Shown here piece by piece: positions 1,980-63,763 of a DNA stretch of 64,000 bases. The notes beneath the pieces were generated by a model. It was given only the letters and a program-made list of their open reading frames with translations, was not told the DNA's origin and did no database searches. The position numbers and the translations under genes are program-made. The DNA is from Bugula neritina (Eukaryota > Animalia > Bryozoa), in assembly GCA_964035545.1 (NCBI GenBank), contig OZ037770.1, forward strand, positions 3,194,662-3,258,661, in the 5' to 3' direction. How positions within the stretch are numbered: position 1 is the stretch's first letter; the number at the start of each line of letters is the position of its first letter.

Positions 1980-4900
1980 ATGACTGACTTAAAGACAAGT
2001 TTCACTTTTGTTGGTAAGTATAATAGACACTACAAAATTTCTATTTTTTTATAACTTCCACTAACTGAAAAAAGTTCCAGTTATACTATAATAATTATAG
2101 TATAACTGGAACTTTTTTCAGTTATTGTTTGTTCACAGCTTAATTTCTGACTTCACTGGTAATGCTGGTATTTGATCACAGAAATAGACTTATTTGGTGT
2201 ACAGCTTATAGATTGTCAAATTTAATAATTATTTAACTGGGAAAAATATTTTAGCTTCAGGGTATTTTATTTTTACCAGCTCGCAAGTGGCTTTTACATC
2301 TTTTTTTGAAAGCAAAAATTTACAAGTTAATTTGCATTTATAAAGTTGCATGTATAATATATTGCCTTTTTTATTGTTAATTGAAAGTTCAACTGCGCGT
2401 TCACATCAAATGTGTTTAACTAGTTATGAGTCAGGTATAAAACATACATAAAATCAACAGGATATTAAACTGATTTGCACATGCTCCATACTTTATTTTT
2501 TTTAAAAGTAGGCCTACATAATAATATATTACTAGCCCTTGACTGCATTTATATGTAAGTATTTGGAAAAAACTGCAACACATTGATTAGAGTTAAACTA
2601 TGACCTACAAGTCCTAGGAGAAGTATTGCATATAGATACACTGACAAGCCCCACTGCTGTGCAACAAACATTTATCTTTATTTACCTGTATCTTAGTCTT
2701 CTTGACAGCTAAAGAGAGAAATCTACAGTGGCTTATTTAACCCTAATAATGTAGCATGCAAATGTATGCCTAATAAATGTTTAAAAGCAAATAAAGAATT
2801 AGCATCAATTGTTGTTACCTGGAGAAGTGCATTCTAAAATGCTCTACTGACTATTAGCTTTACCATACATTTTATTATCAGCTGAAAAATTGATTTTCAT
2901 TCTTGCAAAACATAATATGCATGATGATGAAATGTTGAAGCAATTAAATTGCAGTTATGTAATCATTAATTTGTCTTTTTGCAGTTTTAGCTCTGATTGC
3001 TGGGCCTGGCTTGGCTAGCAGGGAATGCAATCTGCACAACTTTAGTATACGTGGAGCTGCTACTTGCGGCTTACAATGGTGGCAGTCTAAAGACCTCGGG
3101 GAAACAATCAGGGTTTCTAATAAAATATCGGAAATTGTCAAAAACCTGGTAAAATCTGTTAATGCTTCTCTTTACGATGAAATAAGTTTTTCTCTTCATG
3201 GACAGATCATGGCTGAGTCAAATGACCCTCTAGCAAAGGTCATTGAGTCTGCTCTTACGGCATTTCCATTCTATGCAAGCATCGCGGCTGACATTCTCTA
3301 CAGCTTGGAGCTGACTCCAGATATGCTGGTGACTTTGAACCTACCAGAAGAACTTGCGACTAAAGAGTTCTTGCAACAGATGACAAAGGAATACTTTGAC
3401 TTTTCTTGTTCATCGTGAGTAAAATTTCATTTGCAAAACGAAATAAACTCAAGTTTCCATTGTACAAAAAGTCTTCATTGGTTCAGTGTATTAAACGATC
3501 TAAAATAAAAACGAATTACTTTAGGTTTCATCATCTCCTACCTGGTATCGTATATTAGCACCACCCACCTATACATTTGAACCAGTCATCTAAATGTTAG
3601 CACCACCCACTTATATTTATAAACCCCACCCATTTGTCTGAAATAAAAAGGAGCTACTTTAAGTTCCAGCATCTCCTACCTAGTTTTGTATATTATAGCC
3701 CCACCCACTTATATATGAGCCCCACCCACTTAAGTATTAGCACCTTCCATCTATATAGTAAAACCTATTACTTCTATAATTATTGACACCACCCACTTAT
3801 ATATTAGCACCAGTCACCTACATATTGGCCCTACCTACTTATATATTAACCACACTTACTTATATATTGGAACTGCTCATTTATAAATAAATAGCACCAC
3901 CCACCTATGTATTAGCACCACCCATTTATATATTAGCACCACCTAATTATATCATGTATGCATTAGCACCACTCACTTATCCATTAGCACCACCCATTTA
4001 TGCATCAGCACCACCCATGCATTTACATATATATTAGCACCACATATATAATATTAATATAATATAGTGAAGTAGCAATTGCATTCCCTAAGAAATTTTT
4101 GCTACTTTATAGTTCCTAGCTTTCTTGCATTGCTGAACAAATGCTTCTTTGCACTTAAAAATAAATAAAAAATAAGATGGCATATAATATGGGGTAAAAT
4201 TATGCTTTATCAGACATATGCATGTAAAGTCTATATTCAAATTGAATGACAATATTGTAGGTTTGGACTTGAAAGTGTGGTGAGCTGTACAAGGAGATGG
4301 GTAGTCCGCAACTGTAGAAATGGCGAGGATGACGTGCAGCAAGTAGCCAACTTGCTGAATCACCTCTTGAATGAATACTGCTACAACCGCTTTGCTAAAT
4401 CCAGCGTGTTAACCAGTAAGTCTTCAGCAATAGCATTTGATAAATTTTGATGTCAATAATTATTTTTAAATAAATCTCTCGCTTCTATATTATAGTTATT
4501 TGCTATACTGCAGGCTGTAGCTTTATAGGAACAAAAACTTTTTATATACCTGCGAGGTTCTTTATGTAATTACATATTCAATATTGATCCAATAAAAAAG
4601 TTGTTTGATAATATTTCAGCTTTCAACAGAGATTTTGGAGAGATTGGCAAAGCAGTGGTAGATTTTTACTGGGCTGAAGTGAACCAGACAGACTTGCACC
4701 AGCTGCCTCTGTCAAACACCTCTATTCTCGCAGATATCCTTTCTGGCTTTGATATGATAGTGCCACCTGATTTTAGTGCTTGCAGTCAGCTTGCTGAGCA
4801 ACTGATTGCAGGAATTTCTAAAATGAGCAGCCCTTTTAGCAATGTCGGGGTTGGCACAGCTCTAGAGAGTCTATCAGGGTAAGCAGTTTAAATATTAACA

Positions 4901-5683
4901 TTTGACATGCACTAGAATTTAACTTGAAAGCGGTTTTATTTGAGGTGCAGTAATGGAGAAATTGAGAAGATCCCGTGTAGCTCTAGATTATAATTTCAGC
5001 ATAACAAGTTATGCTCTCAAAAAATTTTGCACTTTTGCAAAACTAAAAGTTAGTAAAAAATTAAAGAACTTAGGCTATCTCAGTTTCTTCACTATATAAT
5101 AACTGCTCCTGTAAAAGTTTTTTCTGTCTTGAAACTCCTGAAAAATGAATTATCTTTTCTCAGTACAACTTAACTACTAATCTTGAAATATTGTGTTCAA
5201 TTTTGCCAAATTTAAAACACAAACTTGAAGTTACAATCTCCATGCTGCATGCTATTTCTTTATGGTATAGCATAGGCAGAGATTCTTAACTCTATATTAA
5301 AGAAATTTTTAATTTGAAGTCATGCAATGTGCATATTTTTAATTATGTTGTAAAAATTTCCCGTTTAAATACATCAACAGCATTTTTGGCTACTTTATTT
5401 TTCATTAGCACATATTAACATTTATTCACATATCATAAACTACATTATATATGACTAATCAAGCTAGCACACACAAACACACTGTATGTAGCAGGTTTTA
5501 TAGCAATGTCACCTGATTTATAATTCTAGAAAAATAGGAAGCTATATGGAATGTGTCCTTGACACGATACCTGAGGTATTTCCAGCTCTGGCTACTCAGA
5601 GTTCTCGTGAAAAGTACACCCTCTTCTTCAGACGTTTAGGCCTGTACAGATATGTTCAGCATCTCGATGTCACACAGGGATAG
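1980..5683 (+). CDS. Family copy 1: secreted 8-Cys protein (RGM N-domain-like module), 5 exons, ~343 aa, no GPI tail
   Basis: Exons 1980-2013, 2985-3414, 4261-4415, 4620-4878, 5530-5683. All junctions are GT-AG, phases 1,2,1,2, total 1032 nt, open frame. Starts with a signal-peptide-like MTDLKTSFTFVVLALIAGPGLA-S and ends ...FRRLGLYRYVQHLDVTQG*. Confidence 0.88.
2062..2124. repeat. Perfect 63-bp hairpin (31-bp arms, 1-nt loop) in intron 1 of copy 1
   Basis: TAACTGAAAAAAGTTCCAGTTATACTATAAT-A-ATTATAGTATAACTGGAACTTTTTTCAGTTA. Confidence 0.92.
3550..4045 (+). repeat. ~20-bp minisatellite (TATATTAGCACCACCCACTTA-like) in intron 2 of copy 1
   Basis: About 20 degenerate units. Confidence 0.85.
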
Positions 5684-8884: not shown

Positions 8885-11418
8885 ATGACCTATCTGAAAG
8901 AGATTTCAGTTCTGATTGGTGAGTAGACTAAATTATATTTAAAAGCATACATTTTAAGTTTGTGTCGAAGTTTTCAACAAACTGGAAAGAGAAAAATATC
9001 TCTTTAGCTTAATACTTGTTTTATTTATTCTATGTGCTCTACTCTTAAAGCTTACTACTTTTTTATATTCGGAAAGTAGGCTCTTATGTTCTTTCAGCTA
9101 GATTCTATGCTGTTGTTTTTTATTATTTATTTGACAAAAAAAGAACATATTTTGTAGCTATTCTTTAAAGTTTTACATCTATATTGTCTCTAATTGGAAG
9201 AATATTTTAACATATTTTTGTCTTCACAAGTTATAAACAGTATATTATTATAAAGCTTAGACTTGAATTGCTTTCTAATGTATCCATCAAAATATCAAAT
9301 GACAACATAAAATGTGGTTACAATTATTAAATTGTCGATTAGTTCATCAGCGAGTTACTTGGTCAGTAAGCTACCCAGGAGTTAGTATTTTCAATTAATT
9401 AACTGAATGCGGCATAAGCCAGGTTCATGTTATATAATCTTTGAAATGTGTAAAATTTTGAGCTCGGTAGAAGTTACCATAATTCCTTCTCATTTGAAAA
9501 AATGATTTTTTTTTTTAATATAACTTAATATATCTGCTACCAACAATTTTAAACGAACTAAATTGCTTTAATGACTTCAAACTTGTCTTGCAGTTTTAGC
9601 TCTGATTGCTGAGCCTGGTTTGGCTAGCAGAGAATGCAATCTGTACAACTTTAGTATGCGGGGAGCTACTACTTGTGGCTTACAATGGTGGCAGTCTAAT
9701 GACCTTGGACAAACAATAGCTGTGACAAACAAGATCTCACACATAGCAAGAAATGTGATGAATACTATTAATGAATCCCTTTACCACGACCTAAATTTGT
9801 CATTGGTTGGACAGATTATGGCTGAGTCAAATGACCCCTTAGCAAAGGTCATTGAGTCTGCTCTTACAGCATTTCCATCCTACGCGAGTCTTCTGACTGA
9901 CATTATGTACAGTTTAGAACTGACTCCAGAAATATTGCAACGTTTCAACCTACCAGAAGAACTTGCGACCAAAGAGTTCTTACAGCTGATGACAAAAGAA
10001 TATTTTGATTTTTCTTGTTCACCGTAAGCTATTTTTTAAATTATTAAATTAATAATACCCAAGAACCTTTATTAATATTTAATTTTCTTTTAATATTCTG
10101 AAAAAACATACAAGGAAAAGGGCTTATAAGTTCTATCATTCTCGCATAATGTATGTTGAATTGCATCATTCCAACTGGTATAAATATGTAGTTTAACACT
10201 GCCCATTTAATACAGTATAGCACTGCCCAATTCTTATAGCTTAGCACTGCCCACTTTTCATAACTTAGCACCGCCCATTTTTTATAGCTTAGCACTGCCC
10301 ACTTTTTGTAACTTAGTATACTGCTCACTTACTATAGACTCCTAATTGTCCACTATACCAGTCCAATCTAAAAACGCAGGCTGAATAATATAAGCTCACA
10401 TTTCATTCTGCATAATACTTATACATGCCTATCTTTTTTAACTTACTTGATTGCAATTTTGTAGGTCTGGGATTAAAAGTGTTGTGAGCTGCCTTATGAA
10501 TTGGGTGAGACTCAACTGTGGGTATGATGACAATGTATATCGAATTGATTACATGCTCAGTAAAGTAGCTAATGAATACTGCGATGGTAGCTCAGCTAAG
10601 CCAGCTGTGTTGACTAGTAAGTTATTAGCATGTATAGTTCCTCATAACTGTATAATACATCAATTATTATTTTATTTTAGATATTATACATTTATTTTTA
10701 GAAAAAAGCTTTGTGGTAAACACGGGACTTTTTTAAAAACTAAAATTTCTTCACAAATGTGAGATTTCGATATTGTAACAGTGTTTTTATAATATTGCAG
10801 CGTTTACCAAAAACTTTGGAGAGATTGGTAAAGCAATGTTGAAGCTTTATGGAATTGAAAAAGATCCAACAAGTCCCTACCAGTTCCGTCTGTCAAGCAA
10901 CTCCCTGCTTGCAGACCTCCTTTCAGGTACCAACGTGACCGTGCCGGGTCTCAGCGCTTGCAGCCAGCCTGTAGTGCAGCTGAACAGAGCGATTGCTGAG
11001 CTGAGCAGCCCTTACAGCATTGTAGGGACTGGCGCGGCTTTAGAAAGTCTATCAAGGTAAGTAATTGAGGCGTTTAGTCACATATGGTAGTTACGAAATG
11101 CTTGTATGAATGTTTGATAGCTATTTCTGTCTCTTGTTACACAGAAAACTGTCTTTTTCTAGCTTAAGTTTACACACACGCACACACACAGCACACATGC
11201 ACATGATTGAAGATTTTGGGCCAAGGACTGTCTCTAAAAACTTGCTTTGTTAATTGATAAATTCCATTTGCAGAGAAATAGATGCCTATAATACAGAATG
11301 CGTCCTCAAATTCATTTCTGAAGTATTTCCAGCCCTGGCTTCTCAAAGTTTTGTAGAAAAGTACACTCTCTCTCTCAGACGTTTAGGAGTGTACAGATCT
11401 GATCAAAGTCTCTTATAA
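8885..11418 (+). CDS. Family copy 2: secreted 8-Cys protein, 5 exons, ~338 aa, no GPI tail
   Basis: Exons 8885-8918, 9594-10023, 10465-10616, 10801-11056, 11274-11418 (1017 nt, open). MTYLKEISVLIVLALIAEPGLA-S...RRLGVYRSDQSLL*. Same intron phases as copy 1. Confidence 0.88.
10190..10332 (+). repeat. 21-bp minisatellite (CTTAGCACTGCCCACTTTTTATAG-like) in intron 2 of copy 2
   Basis: About 6-7 units; they generate the spurious SYKKWAVL ORF. Confidence 0.85.
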
Positions 11419-15356: not shown

Positions 15357-15399
<43 letters not shown>

Positions 15400-20495: not shown

Positions 20496-23400
20496 ATGCT
20501 TCTAAAAGTAACTTTAGCATTTATTGGTGAGTAATTAAACTACTTGGGATTTATTCATTTAGTCATAAACTGCTGCTCATATATAAATAATTAAAATAGG
20601 TTAACATTTTTTTAATTGGTTATATAATTTATATTCTATAATCTAACTTTGTTGAACACATTGCTTTTAAACAGTAAAGCTTATGAATGTATATGTTAGT
20701 AGCATGTTACAGTTTCAAATTTATTATATTATCATTATCACTATGCCCAATTCGTATTCAGATTGACATAATTTGGTTTAAAATCGACGATAACTAATAA
20801 ATTATTAAACAAAACAGTTTTTTCTTTCTCAGATATAAAATAATTTTTATGAGAGTACCCAGATACTAACTTCAGAACTATTATAACTTACTTGTTTTGT
20901 GTTGTAGCGTTGGTTGCCAGCCCTACAGTGGCTAGCACGCAATGTAATATGTATAACTTTGGTGTTGGTGCTGGACTCCCTTGCGGCCTGCAATGGTGGC
21001 AATCAAATGACCTTGGACAATCTATAACAGTTTCAAAGAAGATGTCAGACTTTGCTCGGAATGTCATGGATGCCATTGACCCAGCTCTGTACAGTAGTAT
21101 TAATTCTAGTTTGACCGGGCAAATCGCAGCTGAATCAAATGATCCTCTAGCCAAAATTATTGAGTCTGCTCTTACGGTGTTGCCTTCCCTTGCAAATTAT
21201 CTGGCTGACGTGCTGTACAGCTTAGATTTGACACCTCAGATGTTGTATATCTTCAACCTACCAGAAGAGTTTGTTACCAAAGAGTTTCTGCAGCAGATGG
21301 CCAAGGAATATTTTGACTTCTCATGCTCTGAGTAAGTAGTTTGTGTTTTCCGAACATTCTTGTTAACTGGCTGCAGATTGCATAATGATTGTTAAAATTT
21401 ATTTGGACAAAGTAAACATACCTGATGGAAATAGTAAAGAGTTTTGAATAATCACACAGTTTTTGCTGGTAGCTTTTAACTATAAACAACTATGCCTAAA
21501 ATTAAGAAGGAACAAATGTTTCTTGGTAACTGCCTATGTTATAGCTGAAAGTAAATGTTAAACCAAGTTTTAGAAAAACACTAAACATATTGGTATATAA
21601 GCGTACAACACACACCGTTCAATTTTTAATAACAAGAATCTGCTAGTGAAGACCTTTTAATTGTTAAATGTTATAACACTTTCTGGAGATGCTAGATCTC
21701 ATTTCTTCTATTTTAACCAACGGAATCTCAGCTGACTGAATATATAGCTGCATCTATAAAATGCTAAACATAAGTTATGAAGTGTAAAAAATTTGAAAAC
21801 AAATAAATTTAAAAATTGCTTTTCTAATGCTTTCTCTTCTTTGTGACTAGCTCTCATTGTAAAAGATGACTTTTAGGGAATTTTTTAAGTTATTGCAGAA
21901 ATATGTAATATATACCATGTGATTTTAGCTTAACTTATTCTGCATTGTTATTATAGATACGGAGCTAAGGAATTTACAAGCTGCGTCTCTAACTGGGTTG
22001 ATAGCAACTGTGGGGCAGAGGACAACGTAGCTTATCTCAACCAGATTCTCAACAGCCTGGCTAATGAGTACTGTAACGGGAACTCAACCAAGCCCAGTGT
22101 TTTGACAAGTAAGATAGCAACAACTTTACAAGTTTAAAGTTACAGAAATTTTAAACTACATGTCAAATCCGAAAATAAGCACCAAATTAACAGATATGCA
22201 TATTTTTAAATTTTTTAAATAAGTTACAATGACATCGAAAAGCGGTGTACTTTTAAAATCTTGTTACATAATTATTATAACAACTTGCTCTGAATCAAAT
22301 GTAATATATATGCTGTATGATTGTCTAATTTATTTTAAATAGTTTAATTTAACATAGTTTATTTACATCTCTGCAGCCTTCAACAAAGATTTTGGAGAGT
22401 TTGGAAAAGGATTGGTGAAACTCTACGGAATTGAAAAAGATCCATCAAGCCCTTTCCAGTTCCGTCTGTCAAACAGCTCCATTATCACAGGCATCATATC
22501 AGGTGCTAACCTGACAGCTTTTACAAATATTGCTAATACTTGCACTCCCCTTGCATTAGCATTGGGTAGGGATATAACAGAGTTAAGTCAGCAAAACAGC
22601 ACAGTAACCATTGGTGATGCCTTGCAAAGCCTTGAGGGGTGAGTTGAATGATTTCGAGTATGTGCAGTTAAGTTGTATAAATTACTTCTCAGAAGATCAC
22701 AGTTTACATGCTATGAAAAACAAACCTATTTTTATAGTGCATCAGCATAATGTTTATGTAGCAGCTCTAATGCATGAAAAATAACATTGACAATGTGATA
22801 AATAAACATATTATGGACATACTGTATATGAAACAGCCAATAAATAAATTTGTATGTTATTGTAAGTATTAGTTTACCCAGTGAGTTTTAGTTTAATTTA
22901 TAGGTAATGTAAACTATTCTTGTCTATTAGCAGTTTCATAATGTGTAAGATAAAATATATTCTACACATATATGCACAAGTTGGAAAATGTTTCCATCTT
23001 TATATACAGCCTATAAGCTGCATTGTAATCCTGTTTGCAGAGGCATAGAATTCTACGTGAAGTGCACCTTACAGACTGTTGGTAAACTATTTCCCGAGCT
23101 GATAACTCCAAGTACTCTTGACAAATACGAGCTCATACTTCGACGATTTGGTTTCCATGATTTAGACCTAGCTTCACTAGTATGTATTATTATTAAATAT
23201 GAAATTTTTTTATACCACGGAGTGAACACAACTCCTACCAACATGCTAATATTATCTAATTTGCTTTGCATAGTCTTCTTTATTACTTTGCAAAACTGGA
23301 ATCATTTGTGTTTCAGAATTTATAGTATGGTAAAAACTATCTGCAGCAACACATTATCTTTGAACAATCAACTTTAAAATAAATATATTGAGTTTTGTAA

Positions 23401-23653
23401 AATAATTCTAAATCACTTTATATCTGCATGAAGTTATTTAATCAAAACTTTATTACCAAATTTCTGGCATAACATGATTATGCAGTGTAAATTCCATATT
23501 GCTTACTATATTTACAATAAAGTGAATTCAATATTCACATTTTAGGCTGCTGTTGAAGAGACAACTCCCATGAATGGTGCGATGAGCAAAACTCCAATGA
23601 CTGCCAGCTATTTATTCTTTTTTATGGCCTACTTTGTGTGGCGTTTTTATTAA
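20496..23653 (+). CDS. Family copy 3 (type A introns): GPI-anchored 8-Cys protein, 6 exons, ~371 aa
   Basis: Exons 20496-20526 (in-frame upstream ATG at 20472 also possible), 20908-21331, 21957-22108, 22377-22638, 23041-23179, 23546-23653 (1116 nt, open). Signal peptide MLLKVTLAFIALVASPTVA. C-terminus ...[28 protein letters not shown] (small residues, spacer, hydrophobic tail). Confidence 0.9.
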
Positions 23654-28800: not shown

Positions 28801-29848
28801 GGTACATGGAAAGCCGGTGAATATTTCATTTAAGTCAAAGGTTAAAGGTTAAAGGTTGAAGGTCAAAATGGCAGTCGAGTTGTAAATTACTTCTCAGAAG
28901 ATCACTGTTTACATGCTATGAAAAACAAATCTTTTTTTCGCAGCTCAGCGCATCAACATAATATTTATATAGCAGCTTTAATGCATAAAAAATGACTTTG
29001 ACAACTTTTAATAAACGTATGGATATTCTGTATACAAAACAGCCTTTAAATAAAGTTGTATAATCTTGTAAGTATATTAGTTTACTCAGTCAGTCTTAAT
29101 TTAGTTAGGTAAAGTAAACTATTCTTGTTTCTCCTCTATATATCAATATTCTACACACATAGGCATAATTTGAAAAATGTTTCCATCCTTACATACAGCC
29201 TATTTAAGCTGCATTGTAATCCTGTTTGCAGAGGCATAGAATTCTACGTGGAATGCACCATAGAGGCTGGTGGAAAACTATTTCCTGGGCTGATAACTCC
29301 AAGTACTCTAGACAAATACGAGCTCATACTTCGGCGATTTGGTTTCCATGATTTAGACTTAGCTTCACTAGTATGTATTACTATAATTATATGCAATTAT
29401 TAGTTATATATGAACTTTTATTACACCATGAAGTGAACACAACTCCTACCAACATGCTAATAAATAATTGGATTTACATGTGGGGTTCTTCCTTACATTG
29501 CTACACTAGAATAACTTGTTTTTTAATCTAGTATGCTAAAATCATTTTAAAGCAGTACATTGGCTCTAAACAATTGAATTAAAAATAACATAGATTGAGT
29601 TTCGCAAAAAAATTCTGGATCATTTTATATCTGTATATATAAAGTGATTTGATCAAAACTTTATTACCAACATTCAGGTATAACTTGATTATGTGATGAA
29701 AATTCACTATTGTTTATTATTTATAATAAAACGAATTCAAACATTTATATTTTAGGCTGCTGTTGAGGAGACAACTCCCATGAATGGTGCGATGAGCAAA
29801 ACTTTAATGACTGCCAGCTATTTATTCTTTTTTATGGCCTGTGCTTAA
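25828..29848 (+). CDS. Family copy 4 (type B introns): GPI-signal-bearing 8-Cys protein, 6 exons, ~363 aa
   Basis: Exons 25828-25858 (alternative ATG 25804), 26241-26664, 27301-27452, 27724-27976 (9-nt in-frame deletion versus copy 3), 29232-29370, 29756-29848 (1092 nt, open). Tail ...NGAMSKTLMTASYLFFFMACA*. Confidence 0.88.
28055..28819. mobile_element. MITE with GATCGATC-rich subterminal repeats in intron 4 of copy 4
   Basis: TIRs CAC(G/C)GGCTTTCCATGTACCGATCTC / GAGATCGGTACATGGAAAGCCGGTG; AAT TSD. Confidence 0.9.
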
Positions 29849-30265
29849 TTGTTGGCATTAAAAAAAATTGTATTGACTCATTATAGAAGTTAGATATTTA
29901 AGCTTAATTATTTTTATTTATGCAATTTTGGAATAACAACTTAGTTTATTAGCCACTTTTTTATCAAAATAATTAAGTAAACTTTTGCTAATATTAGGTT
30001 TTTTTAAATAATGTCAACATCTAAATTGTTAAAACTTCGCTTTAACAAAACTACATGTTTATAGCAGAAAAACATGTCCCTAGTTCAATCCTGATGGTGA
30101 ATTAGTTTAAAATAATATTTATAAATGTCAAATTGAAAACTCACAGCCCGTGATCTAAGCACGGAGCATACAAAGAAAACCCAGAAGTAATAAGCTTGTG
30201 TAAATAGACTAAAATTACATTAACCATTGACTTAGGAATTATTACTTACTTGTTTTGTGTTGTAG

Positions 30266-46204: not shown

Positions 46205-46205
46205 C

Positions 46206-47597: not shown

Positions 47598-47762
47598 TTA
47601 TATTATTTGAGCTGAAAGCAAATTTTTGAGTAAAGTGGCGGTGCTCAGAGTAAAAGTTATGACTGACAGAGTTGTGCTTAGAATCGGGCTGGAGTTGGTC
47701 AAGTCTCCTTGCTCTTGTATTATTCCTGTGTTAGTCGTGTTGCTGTGTGTCTGATTGAGCTG

Positions 47763-47826
<64 letters not shown>

Positions 47827-47841
47827 TATATACATATATAC

Positions 47842-47926
<85 letters not shown>

Positions 47927-50900
47927 ATAGCTGTAGTGTGATAGGAAGTGATTTAAGAAATGATAAATATATATTTACCTTGTATTTTTCAGCGCTGCTC
48001 ATCAAGGTTGCAAACTGCTTCGAAACTTGAGAGACCTATAACATATAACTGAAATGCAACTATATAATTGATAGATATTTTAGTTGACAAAACATAAGAA
48101 TAGAAAAATGTTTTATGCGTATAAGAATTCATGCATGTTATTCCCATTCCAATATGCCAAACATATATGTAAACGTGACATATAATTTTGCTATTTTTGT
48201 CTTAGATGAATGCTGTAAATTTCTACAGTAAATAAGCAACGAAGGTGCAAACCACATCTAATTGGTGAAGGGTTTTGTGTTACATGTTACTTTAGATAGT
48301 TCTCATGATAAAATGCGCATTGAAATACAAAAGCCAAACTAACATTGAAATCTTTAGTGAAGACACAATCATAGAAGCAGGGATCTCTGTACAGGGTGGG
48401 CACTTTAGAACAAACTTCTTTACATTTTTCTTTTACGGTGTTGTCTTTGGAGTAGTACACGAAACTATCATCTGCAGGTAAAAATTTAAAACATAAAATG
48501 GAGCAACTAACGAAGAGAATGCTTTGGTAAACAAAGCTTAAACACACATTGCAAGTGACACACACGCACACGCACACACACAAACACACACGCACACATG
48601 CACGCACAAACACACAAACACATAAACATGACACACACACTCGTGCATTAGCAAACTGGCTTAGCATAATCTTGGCACTCAATTGCCATGTACAAAATAA
48701 ATAGTCTTCAGGTACAAACACTAATAATAATCACTAAGATTTTTATTTTTAATTTTTCTTGTAAATTTATGATAGGCTGCAATAACATGAAGTTGTCAAT
48801 ATATTTTGCTCATACCTACTATGAATAACCCGTACACAATTATTTATATTACTTTTGATTAACCTGAAATGTTGATGGCTTTACTACATCCGGGTATCAG
48901 CATGCCGAATGAGCGCTTCACAAGTTTCTCAGATGCTCGAACCACAAACAGATATGTGTCTCTATATAAACATACATGATCATAAATTAGAACAATCCAG
49001 AGTATGTATAAAAATGAGTTTTTTGTTGCTTTTAAATTATCAAACTTGTAACAACAGCCTGTGTCATTGCTTTTTTAGCTGGCGAAGTAATTACTTTGAT
49101 GTTTTCAAATTTGGAAAAAAGCTTTAAAGCAAAACAAAAAACAAATACTACATTCAGCTTTTTTGAAAAATTATATTGCTTTGAGTTATTACTATATGCA
49201 TGCGCAGTTTTGGTTAGGTAAAAAAATGATATTCTACTTCGGATTCACAAAGCCTCCTTTTGGTAATTGAATAGTATCATTGTTGAGTTAAAAATCAACC
49301 AACAGTTTTATGTATATTGTTTTAACATATTATATTACATTATATTACATTATATTATATTATAATATATTATATTTTATTGTATTATATTATATTATAT
49401 TATATTATATTATATACTGACTTGTATTTTTCTATATGAATTGAAGAACCAGTTTTATGTTGAGTCATAATCACTGTCTTATTTCCAACTTTTCTTAGAG
49501 TTACTCCTCCTATAAGGTGTAAAATAAATCATGCAGGTAACTCTTATTGCTTTCAAAATAAAACGTGCTATAAGAAATTTGAAGCTGTCTACAGTTTTGC
49601 TCTAAAAAAAACATGGCCATATGTATAAACTGTCATAATTTTAATGTAATATGCTGCCTTTTAATTAGATAATAGTCTATATATTTAGACAGGCACATTA
49701 AATTTGATGAAGCTACAAATCATAAATATATACTTCAATATACCCATTCTAATTGGTTTTGAATAAATTTAGACTACATGATATATCTGCAAAAGTTTAT
49801 TATAGTTAAATAGCAGTGAAAAGGAGGCAAATACTATATTAAAGTTGTTATAAAACCTATTACGGTAATTTTATTATGGAAAATACATTTTATAAAAGTT
49901 TTAGGTTTTTCTTTTAACAACACAGATATGGTTTATTGTGAATAAATTGTTATATAAAAAAACTCCCCTGACACGTTTCAGCCTTTACAAACAAATATCT
50001 TCTTACCCATCATTTGGTTTTACCTGCTAATTTAGATACTAAACTGAAATTTTGTTTCATTACTTAAATTTTACTAATAAAAATTTTAAATTTGTTTATA
50101 TAAAAAAATATGTGTTTTCTATGCAAAATTTAATAAAACATTTATGTTGCATAAGAACAATTTTTTAACGTTCTATTAATTTTTTTCTAAAAACACAACT
50201 TGTTTGCAAAAATAGAATGCAAATAAAACATATATATAGTTACCAACCTGCATTCTTAAGACTTTTCCTATTCTCATACTTAAGACTGTCACTAGGGAAT
50301 TCTCCACTGGTAGTTTGATAGGACACGAGCTTTTGATCGTCTTCATAGAAAATCAGCGACATCTAAAAACGTGATTCATAATTATAAATTTAGCACAACA
50401 TAGTGTTTTCCTTGTTAAGCATGACTCAGCATAACTGATGTAAACATTGAAATATATTTTTGTTGTTATCATTTTTGGCAAAGCCTTTGCCGCTCTAATA
50501 CCTTACAATGTGTTACTTAGTGATTTAGAAAAGTGCTCTTTAATCTGCAAAACCATAAGAGCCTTTTAGTTTGAAACTGGAAAAAAGCATTTGCCATTGG
50601 TCGTTGACTAAAAAGATATTTAGCCTATGAGGTGTTAGCCAGGTCACAATAATTGAAAATCCAAAGGTGATGAATTGAAATGTTAGTGTGGCTCTTGATA
50701 ATGCTAAGGATACCATGGCCTGCAAATTGAAAGACATCTGCAGTATGAATTAATTTGGGGAAACAATAGCTTTGACAAGCTGAGAGTTGATAGGCTGCTA
50801 GAGCCTAATAACTGACAGAGTACAAGTTAGGCGATCATTGAAGTTATAGCAAAGGGAGTGGAACTTGCTGTAGTGATTTCCCATTTGGTGTCCAGTAGAG

Positions 50901-53900
50901 CAAAACATTGGTTTTTACAGCTCATAAACTTGTTGTAATATCTATTCATGACAGAATTTGCATATATAGAAACATAGTTTCAAGTCCTAATGTAAAACTA
51001 CTAGAGCATGGTCCTGCTTTTTATACAGCAAGAAATTATAAGAAATATAATTTGTATGAATGCATGAACAAAGTTAGTCATGAGTATTTGTATAATGTCA
51101 TTACTTAATAAGGTTATTATTCGAAAAATTAGTAAAATAACAAAAACTTTAAAGGACTTGTGGACTCTATAGATTTATAAAAAAAACTCACGCAAGTTTA
51201 TAGTCGCTATCCCTGTGAGAAACCCCTGATGGTAAGGGTTTTTGCTAGAACGGGTTAAGGACTTGTTTAAATGAGGCGCAGGAGCAATTATGACTGGATG
51301 CTCTTCCTAACATCACCAATGGCTTTTGTCAAGGTTCGAACCCACAACTTCGTGTTCAAAAAGCAAACGCTTTAACCCCTAGACCACGGCTGCTCTATAG
51401 ATATTAACAAAATATTGAAGTAGTACTTATTTACAGCAGTGATGTACGTGGCTCCACTATCTCTATCTTCACTTGCATAGTCTGCGTATGCCTGCAGTTT
51501 AAAGTACTCATTCTCCATGTATTTGTGCCAACCAAGAGCTTCACACGTTTCTACAACTCCTTGACTTCTGTAACTGAGCATGTGCGGGTCTCCAAATACA
51601 CCCAACGTATATTGCTCATCAGAATCAAAGTTTATCTACATATAAAATGCTTACCAGTGTCATTGTATAATATAGAAACAAATAACTATACAAAGAGTCA
51701 CGTTATGCAGTAATAGAAGTATTGATTCAAGCAAACTTTATTCATTATTCTTTCATATCAGTATTACATCTATAGCTAAAATGCTGTGCAACTAAAAACA
51801 TTCAATAATGTTATTGCTAAATACTTTAAGTATTTTCATCACAAATTTTACATTATGGTGCAGTGAAAGGATTGTATGCTTGAGAACATACTAAAAATAA
51901 ACTTATTGTATTTTTCACTGTATTGTACAATAAAAGTATTGAATTATTGCAGTATTTCGCAAAAATATCTTTGCATGCTTTACAAAATTTTAAAGAAAAG
52001 TATCGCTTGTTTTATAGTATTGTAAACTAACATTTTTGTCATGTAATAAAGTATTGCATTATCTCAAGGTATTGTATTTTATTGCATAAGTGCTATTGCA
52101 AAACATTTCATATATGCAGTTCATCGAAAAGATTTTCTATGTTATCCCTAAAAGCATGTCCGATATTTTCATTAACAAGAATGATATTTACATGGTTTAA
52201 GCTACATTAAGTATAACCACATATTCTATGAAACCAATCAGCCGACCTCCTGACCAGACACTGCGGGAACTCCAAGCCCTTGGAATACTCTGTTGAAATG
52301 CGCCATAATCCCAGGAGTTATTGCCCCTTCATACTTCTGATTCAGTTCTCTAGTCAGGCATTCTGCATACGAGTGGATCCCGCTGTGAAAAAAAAGTTGC
52401 AAAAGTGTCTTTTTTCAGGTTTTTAGTCTAATGATACTTTCACTTGATTACTGGGTTAATTAAAAACAAAAAGTATTACAATATTTTAGCAGCTAACCAT
52501 GATGCTCCTCTAAAAGTTTAAAGAAGCCAAATGGTAAATTAAGCTTAGTTATATAAGCAAAATACTTACAAAAGAAGACTGTCAACAAGAACTTGTAGAG
52601 AAAGTGTACTGCCTTCGTCTAAGTAATTTGGCTGTTCAAGTTCATCAGATATGAAATTGATTGCTGGAGAGCATCTCTCAATAAATATTTTTTTCAACTG
52701 ACTAAACTTTTCACTGTCAGCTAAGATTGAATTCTCATAGTGAATGTCAACTTTAGAGTCAGTGAGTTGTATTTGAATTCTTAGAAGATTGTCAAGTAGA
52801 GGTTTAAATGAACCTGATAATTTTTCTGTAAATTCTGTAAAATACAGATTATAGAGAAAAAAGTAAAAAAGTAAACAATAAACTACTCTTTCTCTTTGAT
52901 TTATAGCTAAATTAAGAGTCACATATATAGTAATGTTTTAAACTGACATAGTAACTTTTAAATTGATACCAATGATGGATTGCATATCCAGGTTTATTAA
53001 TTTTTTATTTGATTCATTCATATAATTTCTTGCATTGAATATCATTTAATAGAACATGATAAGCTTAAATTTAGTGCAAAGATAAAAAAGTTTAATTTAC
53101 CGGAAATAAGCTCTCGTTTTGCTTCCTCCCCTTCACAATACGTTTCACTCATTTCATCAATCATGTCATTCAAAAAACTTGCTTCATCACCACACAAACT
53201 GCTAAGTTTAGGCTTAGCACAAGCAGCAAAAGCTTTTCTTCCATAACTAGAGTAAAAAGTAGAGTGATTAGCAGTTGGAGACAGTGATAAACAACTACGA
53301 TTAGCAGAACAAATACATGTGTAGGTATAAACAAATAAAGTCGCTATAGAAGCAAACACCAGACAATAAAAAAAAACATTTGAAACTGCATGGAACTGAT
53401 ACCACAATGCCACATTTGAATAAACATAATTTTATCAAAGAGGCTAAAACAATTTGTTTGAAAGCAATTGTTAGAAAACAAAAAATCTACAGACAGGATT
53501 TGAAAATTTCCGATTTTATGCCATCAATTTACAAAGCATCAGATTAAAATCAGAAATGTTTTCTATAATACCATAACTGTGAAATAACTTTTTGCTGTTC
53601 GTTTTTCTGTAACACATTACAATAATTTACATCATATTGTTGCTATATCAAATATATACATCAGTAACTCTTAATTAATTCATTCTGGTTAACTTATCCT
53701 GGAACTTACTTTACATTACATCCAAACTTCACATACTGCTTGATAAAGTCAATGAGAAGATCTGGCCTTGCTAGTGTAGGGTTCAGTTTCAGATAAGAAA
53801 AATGATTTTCTGTAAACCCCAAACCAAAAAATATGGTGCCAGCTGCAAACACAGGAAGTGGTTCAATCGTCAGAAGGGATTCAACAATTTTAGCAAATGT

Positions 53901-56900
53901 AATCGAGTCTGTCAGTGAAATTGATTCACTTGGAGAAGTTGTAGTAGATGTTTGGCTTTCAGAAACTAGAGTTGATGTTTGGCTTACAGGAATTGTAGTT
54001 GGTGTAGGTGTTTGGCTTCTATAAGGAGTTGTAGTTGATATAGGTGTTTGGCTTCTATAAGAAATTGTAGTTGGTGTAGGTGTTTGGCTTTTATAAGGAA
54101 TTGTAGTTGGTGTAGGTGTTTGGCTTCTATAAGGAGTTGTAGTTGATATAGGTGTTTGGCTTCTATAAGGAATTGTAGTTGGTGTAGGTGTTTGGCTTCT
54201 ATAAGGAATTGTAGTTGGTGTAGGTGTTGGTGCATATGTTGGGCTTCTAGGAGTTGTAGTTGGTGCATGTGTTTGGCCTCTAGGAGTTGTAGTTGGTGTA
54301 GGTGTTTGGCCTCTAGGAGTTGTAGTTGGTGCAGGTGTTCGGCTTCTAGGAGTTGTAGTTGGTGCATGTGTTTGGCCTCTAGGAGTTGTAGTTGGTGTAG
54401 GTGTTTGGCTTCTAGGAATTGTAGTTGGTGTAGGTGTTTGGCTTCTATAAGGAATTGTAGTTGGTGTAGGTGTTTGGCTTTTATAAGGAATTGTAGTTGG
54501 TGTAGGTGTTTGGCTTCTATAAGGAATCGTAGTTGGTGTAGGTGTTTGGCTTCTAGAAATCGTAGTTGGTGCATATGTTTGGCTTCTAGGAGTTGTAGTT
54601 GGTGTAGGTGTTGGTGCATATGTTTGGCTTCTAGGAGTTGTAGTTGATAGCATTGTTTTCAGATTTAGAATTAAATGAGTGGCATTAACTTCATTCAGGA
54701 AGGCTTCAATAATATCAGAGAATTCAGCTGACACGTGATTGGTAATTTCCACTGACAAGTCATGTCTGCTCCACCATTCCAGACCACAGGGAATCAGTGA
54801 TTCATTGAGAATGTAGAAAGCATTGCAGCGTGATCCTGCCGCTGCTGGTGTATAACAGGCTGTAACTTGAACAGTGAATAAATATCATATACTACACCAC
54901 GGGATAAATCATATATTATATGCACATTATTAGCATCAATGAGCATGCATTTTTACATTGAAAGTATAACACTGTAGTATACTAAAATTTATTTTGGTTT
55001 AAATAGATTTAAATAAAAATACTACTATGTAGAATGCATCTATATCTACTAATTGCATTTTTGTATTTTATATAAGCAAAATCATGTAATTAAATAAAAT
55101 TTATTATTTACGAATTGCCCGCAATTCAGGGAAGTCAACAGGGACAGCTTAGTCCCTCACAGTCCATACCTTCTCGGGGTCAGTGGCGACCCCGTCTCGA
55201 CCAACTACATGGCCAAGGTACTTAACCTCTTGTTGCAATAATGTGCACTTAGAAGGTTTGAGCTGAAATGAGTGTCGAAGTCGGGGGAGATGACAATGAC
55301 ATCATCGAGATAGATGAGCAAGGTCTTTAAGTGTAACCCACTCAGGACCTGCTCCATGAGTTGCTGGAAAGTGGTCGGCGCAGACGTAAGTCCAAACGGC
55401 AACACCTTCTATTTCTAAAGCCCATCCAGCGTAACAAACGAGACCTTGTCCTGGGTATCAGACTCTGGAGCACCTGCCAATACCCGCTTAGCAAGTCCAA
55501 CGTACTGAAGAACTTGCTATCAGTTAAAGCATCTAACGACTCATCAATCCTAGAAAGAGGGTAAGCGTTCTAGATGGTCACTCTGTTTAGTTTGCAATAA
55601 TCTACACAAAACCTTTAGATCCCATCTTTTTTCTAAACCAGGACAACTGGAGAGCTCCAAGCACTATGAGCTGGCTCAATCAGGTTCTAGTTCAAAAGGT
55701 CTTGCACCTGTCGGCTCACTTCCCTTTCCTTTTCAGGACCTAACTGGCGGGTCGGCTGCCTGATAGGCACCGTCCCAGCTGTCAGGGGTATCTCATGACA
55801 GACAGCCTTAGCCAAGCCCATGTCATGGTCGCTGCAACTAAACACATCTTTGTACTCAGAGAGTAGCTGCACCCCTACCAGGCGTTTCCGCTTCATCTCA
55901 CAGCCATTGCAGTCATCTCCGTACAAATATACCAAGTGTTTAGGCACCAGCCTCCTGCCGTCCCTAGTGGGTACCTATCGGGCTTTGTCCGCTGTTCCCA
56001 GGGCGGGTCCGACATCCTCTTCCTCTACGGAGTGGAACCTTCCCACTAGTGAACCAGCCGGCAGTTCTATCAACTCCGTGAAAAGATTCACACACTGGAC
56101 CAGGAACTCTTCCTGCTCATCCAGTCTATTCAGACTGTTGGTAAGCTGGACGCCCCTAGTGCACCTTCCACCACTCCAAAATCAGGGATTTTCCTACAGG
56201 TCAATCTGCAGCGAACTGTAGCCCTAAAGCGCCCAGGTGCAGTACAGCGCTGTATCACCTGCACTCCCCTCACCAATGATCGACCAAATCGGCGCACACA
56301 GGCCAGCTCACGCCCGGCCATCATCGCCGCCGACTTCTTAAAGTCAAGGTGGCACCTGTGTCGCTTCAGAAATGAGTTGGCTGACGCTGAAGGTCTTGCT
56401 GATCACCTGATCATGGACTCTACCAGTCAATTCTATCACACCATAAAAAGGAATACATGACTTGTCCGCCAACATGCCGTGTTCCCCTTCATATAGCTTC
56501 AGGTTAGCCTGGTCTCTAGCACTGAGTGTGTCAAACAGACGCTGGCTCAGAAGGTTTGTGGTACACCCAGTATCCAATAGGAAGGTGACAGCTTTTCCGG
56601 TAAGTTTACCGGGTAAGGTATAACTTCTTCCATATGGCTGGGCGCTCACTGAGCGGTTCGTCTCTGGAGGCGACACCTCATGTGCATGGAGTTGAAAATG
56701 CACCTGCGCTTTTCGGCTGCGAGGGGGTCGTCTACGTCTCGTGGGCAAGCTGGTTACATCGTGGTCTTACTCACACACAGACGGCCTAGTGAATGCTCGG
56801 TCTTGCGCTCGTGTGAGCAACTGAAAGAAATCCCTGTCTCACAGGATAGTTAAGGGCAACCTTTCAACTGCAACTGCCTTGCTGAGGTTTGCATTGTAAT

Positions 56901-59432
56901 CATATAAGAATTCAGTACCAGTAAAATAAAATCTCACCTAATTGTGCTAGAGTCAAAATTTAAAACTATGTTGTAGATTTTTTTTTCTCCAGTGTAACTT
57001 TTTTAGAAATTTCAATTTTCATATTTTTTGCAAAGTTATAGACAAAAAACTGCCCAATTTTGCCTGAAAAGCTGACTTTTCAGTACCGGTGAAATATCTC
57101 AGCAGCATAACATGATATCTGAATAAAAATTGCACTGCTGGAATCCTGAGATATGTCTCCAGTGTAAGTTTTTTTCCCAATAACTCTTCTAGATTGCCCA
57201 TAAATTGGTGATTTATGCACTAAAAATGCCATATTTTTTCATAGTAAATTAGCAGCGCGCAGTGCTTCACGCTTCAATGAGCATGTAGGGATGTGAAAAT
57301 ATTGGCGGTACATGCTAATTACAGGCTTGCTAGCTGGCAGGCTATTATAAATAGCTTGCTTTGTACTTTGTTTATGTAGCGCCTATAATGGAATGTTGAT
57401 AGATAACGCAGCCCTAATGCAGGTTGCTGCTTATTGGTCGTAGTTTAATCTTAGGCTAAACAATTGCAAGTAGGCAACACGCATGCCACCCGCAGAGCAG
57501 TATTATTCAAGAACCTAAACTAGATTTTGAGAGAAGTTTATGATATTCTTAATGAGGATGCCCTTAACTATCCTGTGAGTGCTCCCACTTGTCGTACATC
57601 AAGCAAACCTTCAAAGTGGTTTTCAAGTGCTCAAGCCGAAGGTTCTGGCGGGCCTTGCAGCCTGCTAACTCTCTTTGGGGCTTGCCACTCTGGAGAGGGC
57701 TGCATCCTTACCCGATTGGCTTTGAGCCTTGGCCTTGGCCTCGGAGGGTTAAACTGAAGCCCACGGTCGGCGGAGTCTACCATAGGCTGTTTCTGTTTAA
57801 CTGCCTCCTTCTACCACGGGGGCAGCTTCAGACGGAATGCCCACCGTTATCACATATTTTGACAGCTGCTGGCGGCCTGGTGGGTCGCTCAGCTGTCGAC
57901 TGTTGGCTGTTTGGCTAACAGCTCGCGAACCAAGCTTGCGGTCAAGCTGGTTAGCTCGTTGGCTGCCACCGTGGCGACATATGCAGTCGTCTTGGCCGGC
58001 GTTGTCGACCTCAACAAGTCGTCGTTGGCCTCAACCTGCTGCACTGTCGTCCTAGGCCGGCATGTACTGTTGGCTTGGAAAAAAGCATTTCCAAGCCTGA
58101 AAGCTCGCTCAATGGTCTCAACCTCAACTACCAGCAAGTGTTGCTTCAGCCCTAGGTTGTTAATAGACTGGAGGAAAGCATCTAGTGCCAAACTCTGCCG
58201 ACCATTCACAGGCAAGTCCCCATAAGCGACTTGTGCTAGCTGTTCTACTACGATTGCGTGCTTGCAAGGTAGTCTAAAGATTTCTCTCAAGTCGTTGGAG
58301 CTGCACATGAGCATCTCAAGCAATCAGCCTAAACCGGGCTCTCAATGCCTCGAAAATATCTCCGACGTCCTGACCTATCCCATAGGGTTTAGCCGGCCCT
58401 ATCAGAAACAACCATAGATGGATCAGAGTAATCCTAGGAGGCCATCGACAAATGGCTCCCACATCACTGAACTGAGTAATAAATTGCTCCACATCCTCTT
58501 TCCCTGAGAAGATGGGAGCACGTAAATGATACCTGTCCATAGGCAGTGTGGGCCGCCTATGTCGTCTTCCATCGCTACCAGTTCCTGACGGGGTATGTCC
58601 TTGTCGTCGGCCATCTTTTAATCCCTGGCTAGGAGTATTTGCAATAAGAAAGATCCCACCACTGCCACCATTGTGTGAATCTACCATTCCCTATAATTAG
58701 TGGATCTACTCATTCAAAGGCACTTCACCAGGTTTATCACGAATTGAATAGAATTTATTATTTACGAATTATACAGCAATAAAAGTTACTAACACTAATG
58801 CACACGATTACATAATAGAGAGTGATTTATACACAACTTTACATGATGAAGATCCAATCCACTGTGCCAGCTAACCGAGCAGTTAACTACTAGCACAAGC
58901 TATTCATACCTCCTACTAAGCTGATTGGCTATTTACTAACGCTAGCTATAATTCCTAATTGACTAGTCCTGCCTTGTTTCACTGCGTACATTGGTAGCTA
59001 GTAATAATTGTCCAGCCAAGTATAAGAGAGACGATATGCATTACGATTGGCAGCGATTACGATAATTAATCTGCTGCAATTGTAGACATCGTGCCATGAT
59101 GCGTATAGGGAGTAAGCCACGAGGAGTTGTCCTTTCATTAAAAACAATAACGATACCAAATCTTTACAATACTCGGGCTCTGACTTACAGACAGGATGAG
59201 AACAAAGAATTTTTTTTGTATAAAAGAAGGCGTCCTCGCAGTGTAAGGTCAGTCTACTACTGGAACTCGCTGGGTCAAGACTACCCTTTTAAAGCATCCA
59301 CTCGACAATAAAGATATATCCACAGTCTACCACTACTACATCTTTTTCTTACTATATTGGAGTTATGCTCCCAACAAAACTGCTACAATACTTACTGAGA
59401 ATAATGATGCTGATTAGGTTAATAAACTTCAT
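47598..59432 (-). CDS. RGM/hemojuvelin-like GPI-anchored protein, 12 exons, ~860 aa: signal peptide, 8-Cys module with mucin insert, GDPH vWF-D domain, Cys-rich C-terminal region, GPI signal
   Basis: Exons 59432-59396, 54859-53710, 53246-53101, 52834-52570, 52382-52247, 51635-51435, 50362-50248, 49509-49422, 48961-48864, 48471-48344, 48035-47979, 47759-47598. All GT-AG, 2583 nt, open. Key motifs: [24 protein letters not shown]; CGLEWW; [44 protein letters not shown]; [14 protein letters not shown]; [14 protein letters not shown]; hydrophobic C-terminus. The exon 5 donor (gtcggc) is weak. Confidence 0.85.
47766..47925. repeat. (TA)n tract filling most of the last intron of the RGM-like gene
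   Basis: Read directly. Confidence 0.95.
51205..51395 (-). mobile_element. tRNA-derived SINE with a V-SINE-like central domain
   Basis: Minus strand reads GAGCAGCCGTGGTCTAGGGGTTAA (A-box) ... GGTTCGAACC (B-box), then TTGGTGATGTTAGGAAGAGCATCCAGTCATAA, which resembles the V-domain GGAAGGGCATCCGG motif. A degenerate second copy lies at ~11718-11900. Confidence 0.65.
53984..54650 (-). repeat. Coding minisatellite (30-39 bp units) encoding a mucin-like [17 protein letters not shown] repeat
   Basis: Roughly 20 tandem units of gtagttggtgtaggtgtttggcttct(ata)agga inside exon 2 of the RGM-like gene; all length variation is in multiples of 3. Confidence 0.95.
56838..57579. mobile_element. Non-autonomous DNA transposon nested in the Gypsy gag-pol region
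   Basis: Terminal inverted repeats CTCACAGGATAGTTAAGGGCA / TGCCCTTAACTATCCTGTGAG around an AT-rich interior. Possible 3-bp TSD TGT/TGC. Confidence 0.8.
58652..58670 (-). other. Primer-binding site complementary to the 3' end of tRNA-Leu
   Basis: TGGTGGCAGTGGTGGGATC lies 1 nt inside the LTR. It resembles the complement of the eukaryotic tRNA-Leu 3' end (...ATCCCACCGCTGCCACCA). Confidence 0.8.
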
Positions 59433-61008: not shown

Positions 61009-61011
<3 letters not shown>

Positions 61012-61459: not shown

Positions 61460-61632
61460 ACTGCTACTGCCATACTGCTACTGATACTGCTACTGCTATA
61501 CTGCTCTGATACTGATACTGCTATACTGCTACTGAAACTGCTACTGCTACTGCTATACTGATACTGCTACTGCCATACTGCTACTGATACTGCTACTGCT
61601 ATACTGCTCTGATACTGATACTGATACTGCTA
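61460..61632. repeat. (TACTGC/TACTGA)n hexamer repeat
   Basis: Read directly. Confidence 0.92.
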
Positions 61633-61840: not shown

Positions 61841-62855
61841 CTATCACAGCTATAAAGGAACAAAGTATAAATAATATTTTTTGTACAAGAATATTTCGTT
61901 GTTAATTTTTTTCATTATTTTTTGTGTTTTTTATTTCAATTCTTATTATATTTTCCTATATCTGAGGACAGCCACTGAAAATAAATCCGCCATAGCTGAC
62001 CTCTGACCTTATATATATATATATATGTGAAGCAGAATAGTGATAAGTTACAACTGACAAGCTATAAAAATCTTGAATGTGGCATCATATATACACACAC
62101 TATTTTTATATATATTGTCGTAAGTTTTGTTGTTTAATTGGTGATTGTTGATTTGCTTTTTTTTAATGTAGCTTTTGTTTTGTTTTACGATAATGAAATT
62201 TTAATTGCTTCAAAGTTGTAAAACATTGCCAAAAATGTAGGCATGCAGCTCAAGTCATACAAATTTATTTTTCAATAATAATAAAACGGCACAAAAAAAT
62301 AAATATATTTTATAATCTAAACTGAGTTGCATCACTTGATCAATGTATAATCGCAACACATTGAAAATAAACAATTTTGTTGATAATATAAAATCAGGTA
62401 TAAAAGTGATGTTCAACTCCGCAAGCATAAACGTATAGAGTATATTGAACATAATAAAACAGTTTTTCAAATACATAAATTAGAGTATAAGTAACAAAAT
62501 ACCATATTTCACAGAAATGTATATATACCTTGAATTAGCAATTTTTATGACAATCATGATATTAATTACTTTTCATTAACTGCAGCATGATAAAGATGCT
62601 CTGAAAATATTATTTTTGTTTCATTATGGCAGAACCTATAATTTTAGCATAAAGTCTCTAAAATTTAGAAACACACATGGAAGGTAAAAGTTGACAAAAA
62701 ATATGCATTAAATTTTTTGATGAGGGTGTAAAAATTTATTTTAAAAAATGTATTTGTCTTTCCTGAATATATCGCCACTAATTAACATTTTGTGCTGTGC
62801 AGTTTCAAGTTATGTATTGATATAAAATAAGTCAGCGGGTAAAAAAACAGGTTGT

Positions 62856-63763
62856 TTAACTAAATATTGCTGCCACAGCTGCAATCATCATCACACAGGT
62901 CAGCATGGTTGTAGGTTTGTCTGCTCCTGAATTTTCGTTTTCAACTCTATTGAAGTCCTCTAAGATGCTATCGTCGTCGCTTTCAATCTCTTCCTGCATG
63001 CCCGCAACATCAATAAACGTTTCGGCTACCTGCAATCAATAAACAGATATCACATTACATATTACATCACATTAAACTCACATTATATAGCACCATATTT
63101 TATTATATAATGTACATTATTTTACATTACATTACATCTAATTTACATGCTATAACTACATAATAATATTAGGCTAAAGTTGCATCATGTTTGTATTACA
63201 TTGCATCATATTGCATTTACACTACTGTATGTTTAAAACCATCAGCATTGTATTGCATTCAAAATGGCATCAACTAAAGTTCTTTTAATAATTATTTTAG
63301 GATAAATAAAACTTTCAGTAAAAATGCACTATATATAATTATATTTGCTACAACAATATAAATCATAATTACATTGATTCGAATAAAATAGAAAAGCCAG
63401 AAACTAACAGTGTTGGCTATAAGATATACATGTTATGTTATGGGTAATGGTTAGTTGTACTGAATATATTCATTCGGTAATGCTTTTGATTCTAATAAAC
63501 CTGACAAATTGCAGCAAAAAATAAATATTAATTGTGGTAGAAAACTAATAAAATGCATTTATTTGAGACATGGCCAGACTATTGAAGGATATGTTGGTAA
63601 CTGATGAAATTATAGCAGCTTTTACAAAATGGTAGTTATCTCCTCCCACTCACCTCAATGTCCCCTGTGACCTGGCAGTCAAAGACACACGCATCCCGGT
63701 ACAAGGAGTTGATACCAGTGCAGGCGCTTTCACATTCTTCCGTACTTCTTTTCTTTCTTTTGG
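62856..63763 (-). CDS. Last two exons of a second RGM-like GPI-anchored gene (5' part lies beyond the window)
   Basis: Exon 63763-63654 encodes KRKKRSTEECESACTGINSLYRDACVFDCQVTGDIE, homologous to exon 48471-48344 with the same phases. Exon 63029-62856 encodes VAETF...ENSGADKPTTMLTCVMMIAAVAAIFS*, a GPI-like signal. Confidence 0.8.

Follow-up and report, generated by a model that had tools for sequence, protein, structure and literature searches.

A 64,000-nt stretch of the 216-Mb Bugula neritina genome (contig OZ037770.1, designated here as C6, positions 3194662-3258661; referred to below as the window) was found to carry a cluster of genes encoding a common helical, cysteine-rich module of ~320 aa, present either without further domains or joined to a C-terminal half resembling that of the RGM/hemojuvelin (HJV) proteins. 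Seven short genes (copies 1-7) lie on the plus strand, while the minus strand carries long gene 1 and the last two exons of long gene 2 (Table 1). Family members near the window exhibit ~90% identity to the NCBI B. neritina proteins KAF6034273.1 and KAF6022777.1.

The motif CGL(Q/E)WW occurs eight times in the window, i.e. once in each short copy (positions 3065, 9674, 20982, 26315, 30340, 36575 and 41736) and once in long gene 1 (position 54788, minus strand). Exon models bounded by GT/AG splice sites place eight aligned cysteines in every copy, and all modules display intron phases 1, 2, 1 and 2, followed by phase 0 in the six-exon copies and in the long gene. An initial annotation of the sequence had described the same cysteines, motif and phases, all of which were located as described, and its splice models were confirmed for short-copy introns 2-5. 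This confirmation derives from RNA-derived contigs of other colonies, which were aligned to copy 3 at 85% likeness and may originate from any of copies 3-7. They are joined where the copy-3 model has introns 2-5, and a loose end continues from exon 1 to exon 2. RNA contigs were present on all six exons, showing that short copies are transcribed.

The gene architectures proposed in the initial annotation required several corrections. Copies 1 and 2 were correctly described as module only, with a signal peptide and no hydrophobic tail. The combination of module and glycosylphosphatidylinositol (GPI) tail, assigned to copies 3-7, holds for copy 3; the C-terminal hydrophobic tail is shortened in copies 4 and 6, and neither an exon 1, an upstream region nor a substitute exon 1 was found for copies 5 and 7. 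As exon 1 is absent and copy 7 additionally contains two in-frame stops (42731-42733 and 43318-43320), these two copies are not stand-alone intact genes. Long gene 1 comprises 12 exons (59432-47598), and 62856-63763 belongs to the second long gene. Long gene 1 does contain the module, mucin, GDPH domain and GPI-type tail attributed to it, with the mucin segment located inside module exon 2 and not between the module and the von Willebrand factor type D (vWF-D) domain. This segment is composed of 35% Thr and 22% Pro, encoded by tandem units of 33-36 nt. The GDPH sequence occurs once in the window (51593, minus strand).

Long gene 2 comprises 11 exons (601 aa), has no mucin segment and starts ~7.3 kb beyond the window. 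It also encodes GDPH, and its introns 5 and 10 are both in phase 0. Its RKKR sequence follows the beta domain and precedes the last helices, where HJV has its RNRR furin site. An older NCBI assembly has a frame break in exon 5 of this gene, which there appears as two separate genes of 313 aa and, with RGM_C, 282 aa. Exon 6 of the two long genes (51435-51635; L031:3884-4084) is nearly identical in DNA over ~130 nt, the other exons being only 25-60% identical in protein, and it also differs from the allele of the older assembly; this likeness is the product of gene conversion.

Table 1. Genes of the cluster and their principal parts; positions are those of the window
Feature	Position	Strand	Description
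Copy 1	1980..5683	+	343 aa; signal peptide and module, no hydrophobic tail; predicted secreted
Copy 1, exons (5)	1980-2013, 2985-3414, 4261-4415, 4620-4878, 5530-5683	+	
Copy 2	8885..11418	+	5 exons, 338 aa; signal peptide and module; predicted secreted
Copy 3	20496..23653	+	371 aa; signal peptide, module and GPI-type tail; introns in RNA contigs
Copy 3, exons (6)	20496-20526, 20908-21331, 21957-22108, 22377-22638, 23041-23179, 23546-23653	+	
Copy 4	25828..29848	+	6 exons, 363 aa; hydrophobic tail shortened; 5' half of probable gene 4+5
Read-through intron (probable)	29787..30265	+	479 nt; copy-4 exon 6 donor to copy-5 exon-2 acceptor
Copy 5	30266..33709	+	No exon 1; otherwise intact module and GPI-type tail
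Copy 6	36085..41242	+	Duplicate of copy 4, 364 aa
Copy 7	41662..44399	+	Duplicate of copy 5, likewise without exon 1; broken in present genome
Long gene 1	47598..59432	-	862 aa in 12 exons; signal peptide; exons 2-5, module with mucin insert; exons 6-10, RGM_C-like GDPH domain; tail GPI-type, weakly hydrophobic
Long gene 1, exon 6	51435..51635	-	GDPH at 51582-51593; no cysteine before GDPH
Long gene 1, Thr/Pro mucin insert	53928..54647	-	aa 86-325 (~240 aa), inside exon 2, in module loop
Long gene 2, exons 10-11	62856..63763	-	RKKR furin-type site, RGM_C C-terminal helices, GPI-type tail

The C-terminal half and the module in comparison with RGMs

Database and Pfam searches were performed exon by exon, joined models being used in local scripts only, and single-exon RGM_C scores fell below the Pfam cut-off of 27 bits. 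Pfam RGM_C (PF06534) matched exon 6 (E 6.6e-5 for that of long gene 1, and 8.9e-5) and exon 10 of long gene 2 (E 9.8e-4), the matches of the long genes covering both ends of the PF06534 model in the correct order, and the NCBI 282-aa model also matched PF06534 at E<=1e-5. The short genes are devoid of RGM_C. These comparisons support an RGM_C-like nature of the C-terminal half of the long genes. Exons 6-10 showed no match to VWD (PF00094) at E<=5.

The long genes of the cluster are not the RGM orthologue of this genome, as a canonical RGM with both domains is located on contig C1 (527131-537431; L016, L017 and L021; 102.8 and 81.1 bits for RGM_C and 29.6 bits for RGM_N). The canonical Bugula RGM carries cysteines before GDPH, further upstream, in mid-domain and at the first position of LCxxSC, all of which are absent from both long genes, and the long-type sequence of another species (L058) also has no cysteine before GDPH. 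In RGMs, such cysteines tether the two halves of the protein. The cleaved halves of RGM/HJV stay disulfide-linked (PMC4395201), unlike those of ITIH, which has no linking cysteine and is released (PMC11670116). Because the tether cysteines are absent, cleavage of the long proteins at GD-PH probably frees the module.

The initial annotation regarded the module as the N-terminal domain of RGMs and the short genes as BMP decoys, neither of which was borne out. No match to RGM_N (PF06535) was obtained in the cluster at E<=1 with a model that does find the canonical RGM on C1, module profiles aligned to the genome's own RGM_N with an hhalign probability of <0.3%, and sequence and fold searches of PDB with the module retrieved no RGM. 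The module is also much larger than RGM_N (~320 vs ~70 aa). The BMP-binding linker of RGMs, RGD/RGN-L-x-Y-H (PMC7354924), has no counterpart in the module alignment, where the equivalent part of exon 3 is acidic (e.g. AEDNV or EEEDK, after the fifth cysteine); the canonical Bugula RGM retains G-x-L-x-Y of this linker. By these comparisons, the module is not detectably RGM_N.

The module is predicted to be all-helical, with a conserved WW and many hydrophobic residues. Its exon-2 domain was modelled as nine helices (pLDDT 85, pTM 0.75), for which the best Z among 48,161 chains was 3.4 and no Foldseek match was obtained, a result that is no proof of a new fold. For the full module, alignment depth was confined to exon 2, and the fold of the longer module was predicted from the NCBI 313-aa protein. 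The exon 3-4 region reached a pLDDT of only 35-62, with the exon-3 part (pLDDT ~60) appearing as a helical hairpin; cysteine spacing in the exon-3 region is 11-8-20, and that of RGM_N is ~8-7-21. As this region was modelled poorly, exon 3 may possibly contain a remote RGM_N-like helix pair.

Intron phases and repeated alignments suggested that the module arose by duplication, with exons 2+3 corresponding to 4+5, but this was not significant, since 1-7 of 40 column shuffles reached the same score. RGM_N matches exceeding the Pfam cut-off on contig C239 (300000-392000; L022-L030) were false, being derived from a 9-bp-based satellite array. An ESM Atlas search returned no usable match, and word-based searches for full-length homologues yielded nothing new.

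Family distribution and derivation of the short genes

Profile searches identified 14 close module loci on C6, of which 11 belong to the cluster and three lie at 0.86-1.01 Mb. Together with a divergent long-type gene at C6:8.796 Mb (L053), in which GDPH is replaced by GRNS and which is therefore predicted to be non-cleaving, the genome contains at least 15 module loci. C1 carries three further, more distant GDPH genes, whose C-terminal half has the same exon layout and which contain exon-3-type units, two or more of them in the gene at 33.79 Mb. This gene (33.78-33.79 Mb; L055 and L056) is large, with at least 20 exons, repeated helical cysteine units, a GDPH domain, an RKR site and a GPI-type tail; the pieces of it that were scanned gave no Pfam match. 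A tandem pair of distant GDPH genes with exon-3-type units lies at C1:17.158 and 17.172 Mb (L060 and L061).

When searched against 1.84 billion representative proteins, exon 2 yielded 14 matches only, consisting of Bugula records and non-Bugula contigs. The non-Bugula homologues display 25-45% identity and the same intron position, and we infer that the family is restricted to bryozoans. Literature searches turned up no paper describing the module family. In the contig of another species (L058), the GDPH exon is found together with exons 2-5 of the module; judged by its sequence, the long type with module and GDPH is conserved there, and the divergent paralogues in the present genome are also long-type.

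In phylogenetic comparison, a single clade (98/96) unites the Bugula short genes, and the long genes group separately (100/99). The short genes are shown to represent a derived clade, which lost the RGM_C cassette bounded by phase-0 introns. Because introns 5 and 10 are both in phase 0, loss of exons 6-10 gives module plus GPI directly. The tree and the conservation of the long type in another species uphold the earlier proposal that the module was split off as GPI-anchored and secreted genes. In the distant copies L036 and L038, exon 5 ends in a stop codon and is followed by a GPI exon in decay, indicative of a change from GPI-anchored to secreted. Pairwise ratios of non-synonymous to synonymous substitution (dN/dS) were 0.22-0.55 throughout, indicative of purifying selection.

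Copies 4 and 5 are probably one two-module gene. The read-through donor, in phase 1, is found within exon 6 of copy 4 after its first 31 nt, where the GPI is likely to be attached. An RNA contig from run X3 contains exon 5, the initial 31 nt of exon 6 in a variant found in copy 4 only and, joined to these in frame, an exon 2. The evidence for this joint consists of that one X3 contig (depth 9) and matching loose ends in run X2; the same exon-6/exon-2 joint could also stem from a circular copy-4 RNA. The joined frame is stop-free and encodes 704 aa, corresponding to signal peptide, module, 10-aa linker, module and GPI tail. A two-module gene would explain why copy 5, despite being headless, has stayed intact under purifying selection (dN/dS of 0.24 vs copy 3), as well as why the copy-4 tail is shortened. 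An assembly artefact at the junction is unlikely, as the same join of 3' end and exon-2 upstream region is also present in a contig of a different colony. The unit 24300-31224 shows a ~93% match to 34515-42588, copies 6+7 being a duplicate of 4+5 in which the second module is broken. A perfect 358-nt palindrome (34008-34365) is located where the 4+5 unit meets its duplicate, and may represent a duplication breakpoint mark or an assembly fold-back.

Proposed function and alternative explanations

The long proteins are proposed, with roughly even confidence, to be GPI-anchored precursors that autocleave at GD-PH, both presenting the module at the surface and releasing it, with the short genes supplying the same module in tethered, secreted or doubled form. 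The ancestral form would have consisted of a signal peptide, the module, the RGM_C-like GDPH domain and a GPI anchor. Autocleavage would proceed as in RGMs, and the RGM_C part would act as a display-and-release anchor for the module, the tethering disulfides being missing. To this arrangement long gene 2 would have added a furin site and long gene 1 a mucin spacer. Loss of the phase-0-bounded cassette of exons 6-10 would have produced the module-GPI genes, stop gains the secreted genes, and a promoter deletion with a cryptic donor the two-module gene. The most likely role would be that of an abundant protein that binds a ligand in the coat or mucus layer on the surface of the colony, not that of a BMP co-receptor.

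Several points weigh against this proposal. Cleavage, release, GPI addition and ligand are all inferred, and the signal-peptide and GPI assignments are based on hydropathy only. The RNA joints cover short-copy introns, the long-gene splice models being drawn from the genomic sequence; the tree was rooted by midpoint and several of its outgroup rows are half-length. Furthermore, the module may remain attached non-covalently through a beta strand that precedes GDPH, and the loss of GDPH in the long-type paralogue L053 indicates that cleavage is not required in all members.

With RGM, hemojuvelin and DRAG-1, the long proteins share GDPH at the start of an RGM_C-like domain, a C-terminal helical part with ACVFD-x3-TGD and a furin-type site (long gene 2), as well as a signal peptide and a GPI-type tail that are predicted from hydropathy. 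They differ in that their N-terminal part is the ~320-aa module, with neither an RGM_N match nor the BMP-binding motif, in the absence of tethering cysteines, and in belonging to an expanded family that is mostly without RGM_C. Compared with the genome's own RGM, their C-terminal half is ~33% identical over the best 36 aa and is encoded by five exons vs three. The family is therefore RGM-like in its processing logic, but falls outside the RGMs with respect to RGM_N by sequence, the BMP motif, the tethers and orthology.

RGM domains have been reviewed as unique to the RGM family and not reported in others (PMC10084454). With confidence just short of even, it is proposed that RGM_C is not confined to RGMs, and that bryozoans use it as a general-purpose, GPI-anchored device for the autoproteolytic release of a new extracellular helical domain without a solved relative, this domain being deployed in released, tethered, secreted, mucin-extended and tandem (read-through) forms. 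The joining of RGM_C to an N-terminal part that is either unrelated or changed beyond recognition would make the GDPH domain a mobile processing unit, and loss of the tether cysteines predicts release instead of a linked heterodimer from the same chemistry. The module is a candidate new extracellular fold from a phylum that has received little study, and its naturally secreted versions should lend themselves to expression; the locus records stepwise how a receptor-like gene yields GPI-anchored, secreted and two-module genes.

Among the alternatives, immune or allorecognition receptors, i.e. a birth-and-death family of GPI-anchored and secreted pattern- or self-recognition proteins, are considered unlikely. 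Tandem expansion, pseudogenes, the exon-6 gene conversion and the many differences in RNA contigs between colonies are consistent with such a family in a colonial animal with a bacterial symbiont; however, all pairwise dN/dS values point to purifying selection, no signalling tail is present, and the contig variation may reflect mixing of paralogues.

The notion that the module is a much enlarged RGM N-domain, with the short genes encoding soluble and tethered BMP decoys or modulators, is rather unlikely. It draws on the RGM-like layout (helical Cys-rich N-terminal part, GDPH domain, furin site and GPI), on the exon-3 hairpin with its cysteine spacing near the RGM_N pattern, and on soluble HJV being a known decoy (PMC4395201), yet is opposed by the profile and fold searches described above, by the acidic linker at the position of the BMP-binding motif and by the separate canonical RGM on C1.

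ITIH-like matrix cross-linking, in which the Asp exposed at the module end by GD-PH cleavage would be joined to mucus or cuticle glycans, is considered improbable. The mucin insert would suit this function, and ITIH and the sponge aggregation factor (MAFp3/4) likewise have an Asp-Pro site in a vWD-like domain without a linking cysteine, from which the N-terminal part can be released (PMC11670116). Conversely, the GDPH domain has been lost from most copies, making this chemistry impossible there, its best family is RGM_C and not ITIH, no ITIH or wreath match was found, and the Bugula proteins are predicted to be GPI-anchored and have a different N-terminal cargo. The GDPH-vWD mucins (MUC4, SUSD2 and FCGBP) similarly share GDPH and, with long gene 1, a mucin segment, but the Bugula proteins have no VWD match and their mucin is an insert inside the helical module.

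A role in carrying small hydrophobic compounds (lipids, sterols or macrolides of the symbiont, e.g. bryostatin) is similarly improbable, since an all-helical disulfide-linked fold with a conserved WW and many hydrophobic residues, and a possible likeness of the tandem units and furin sites to nematode polyprotein lipid-binding units, stand against the absence of a lipid-binding fold among the matches and the presence of homologues in non-Bugula species.

Mobile elements and gene remnants

Intron 1 of long gene 1 contains a broken Gypsy-like retrotransposon in the same orientation (55100-58700, minus strand), with gag-like, aspartyl protease (Pfam E 1.3e-4) and reverse transcriptase-like pieces spread across several frames; no pair of long terminal repeats was found. 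Copy 2 lies between two elements of ~340 nt in opposite orientation (8091-8429 and 12612-12963), copies of each other that bear terminal inverted repeats and resemble a miniature inverted-repeat transposable element. Intron 4 of a distant copy (L037:5200-6900) carries an insertion of ~1.7 kb with an open frame that was judged by eye to be GIY-YIG-like, exon 5 of this copy not being found within the fetched DNA. Finally, 46205-46727 represents a decayed relic (~70%) of an exon-6 tail and its 3' flank, i.e. the remnant of another short copy.

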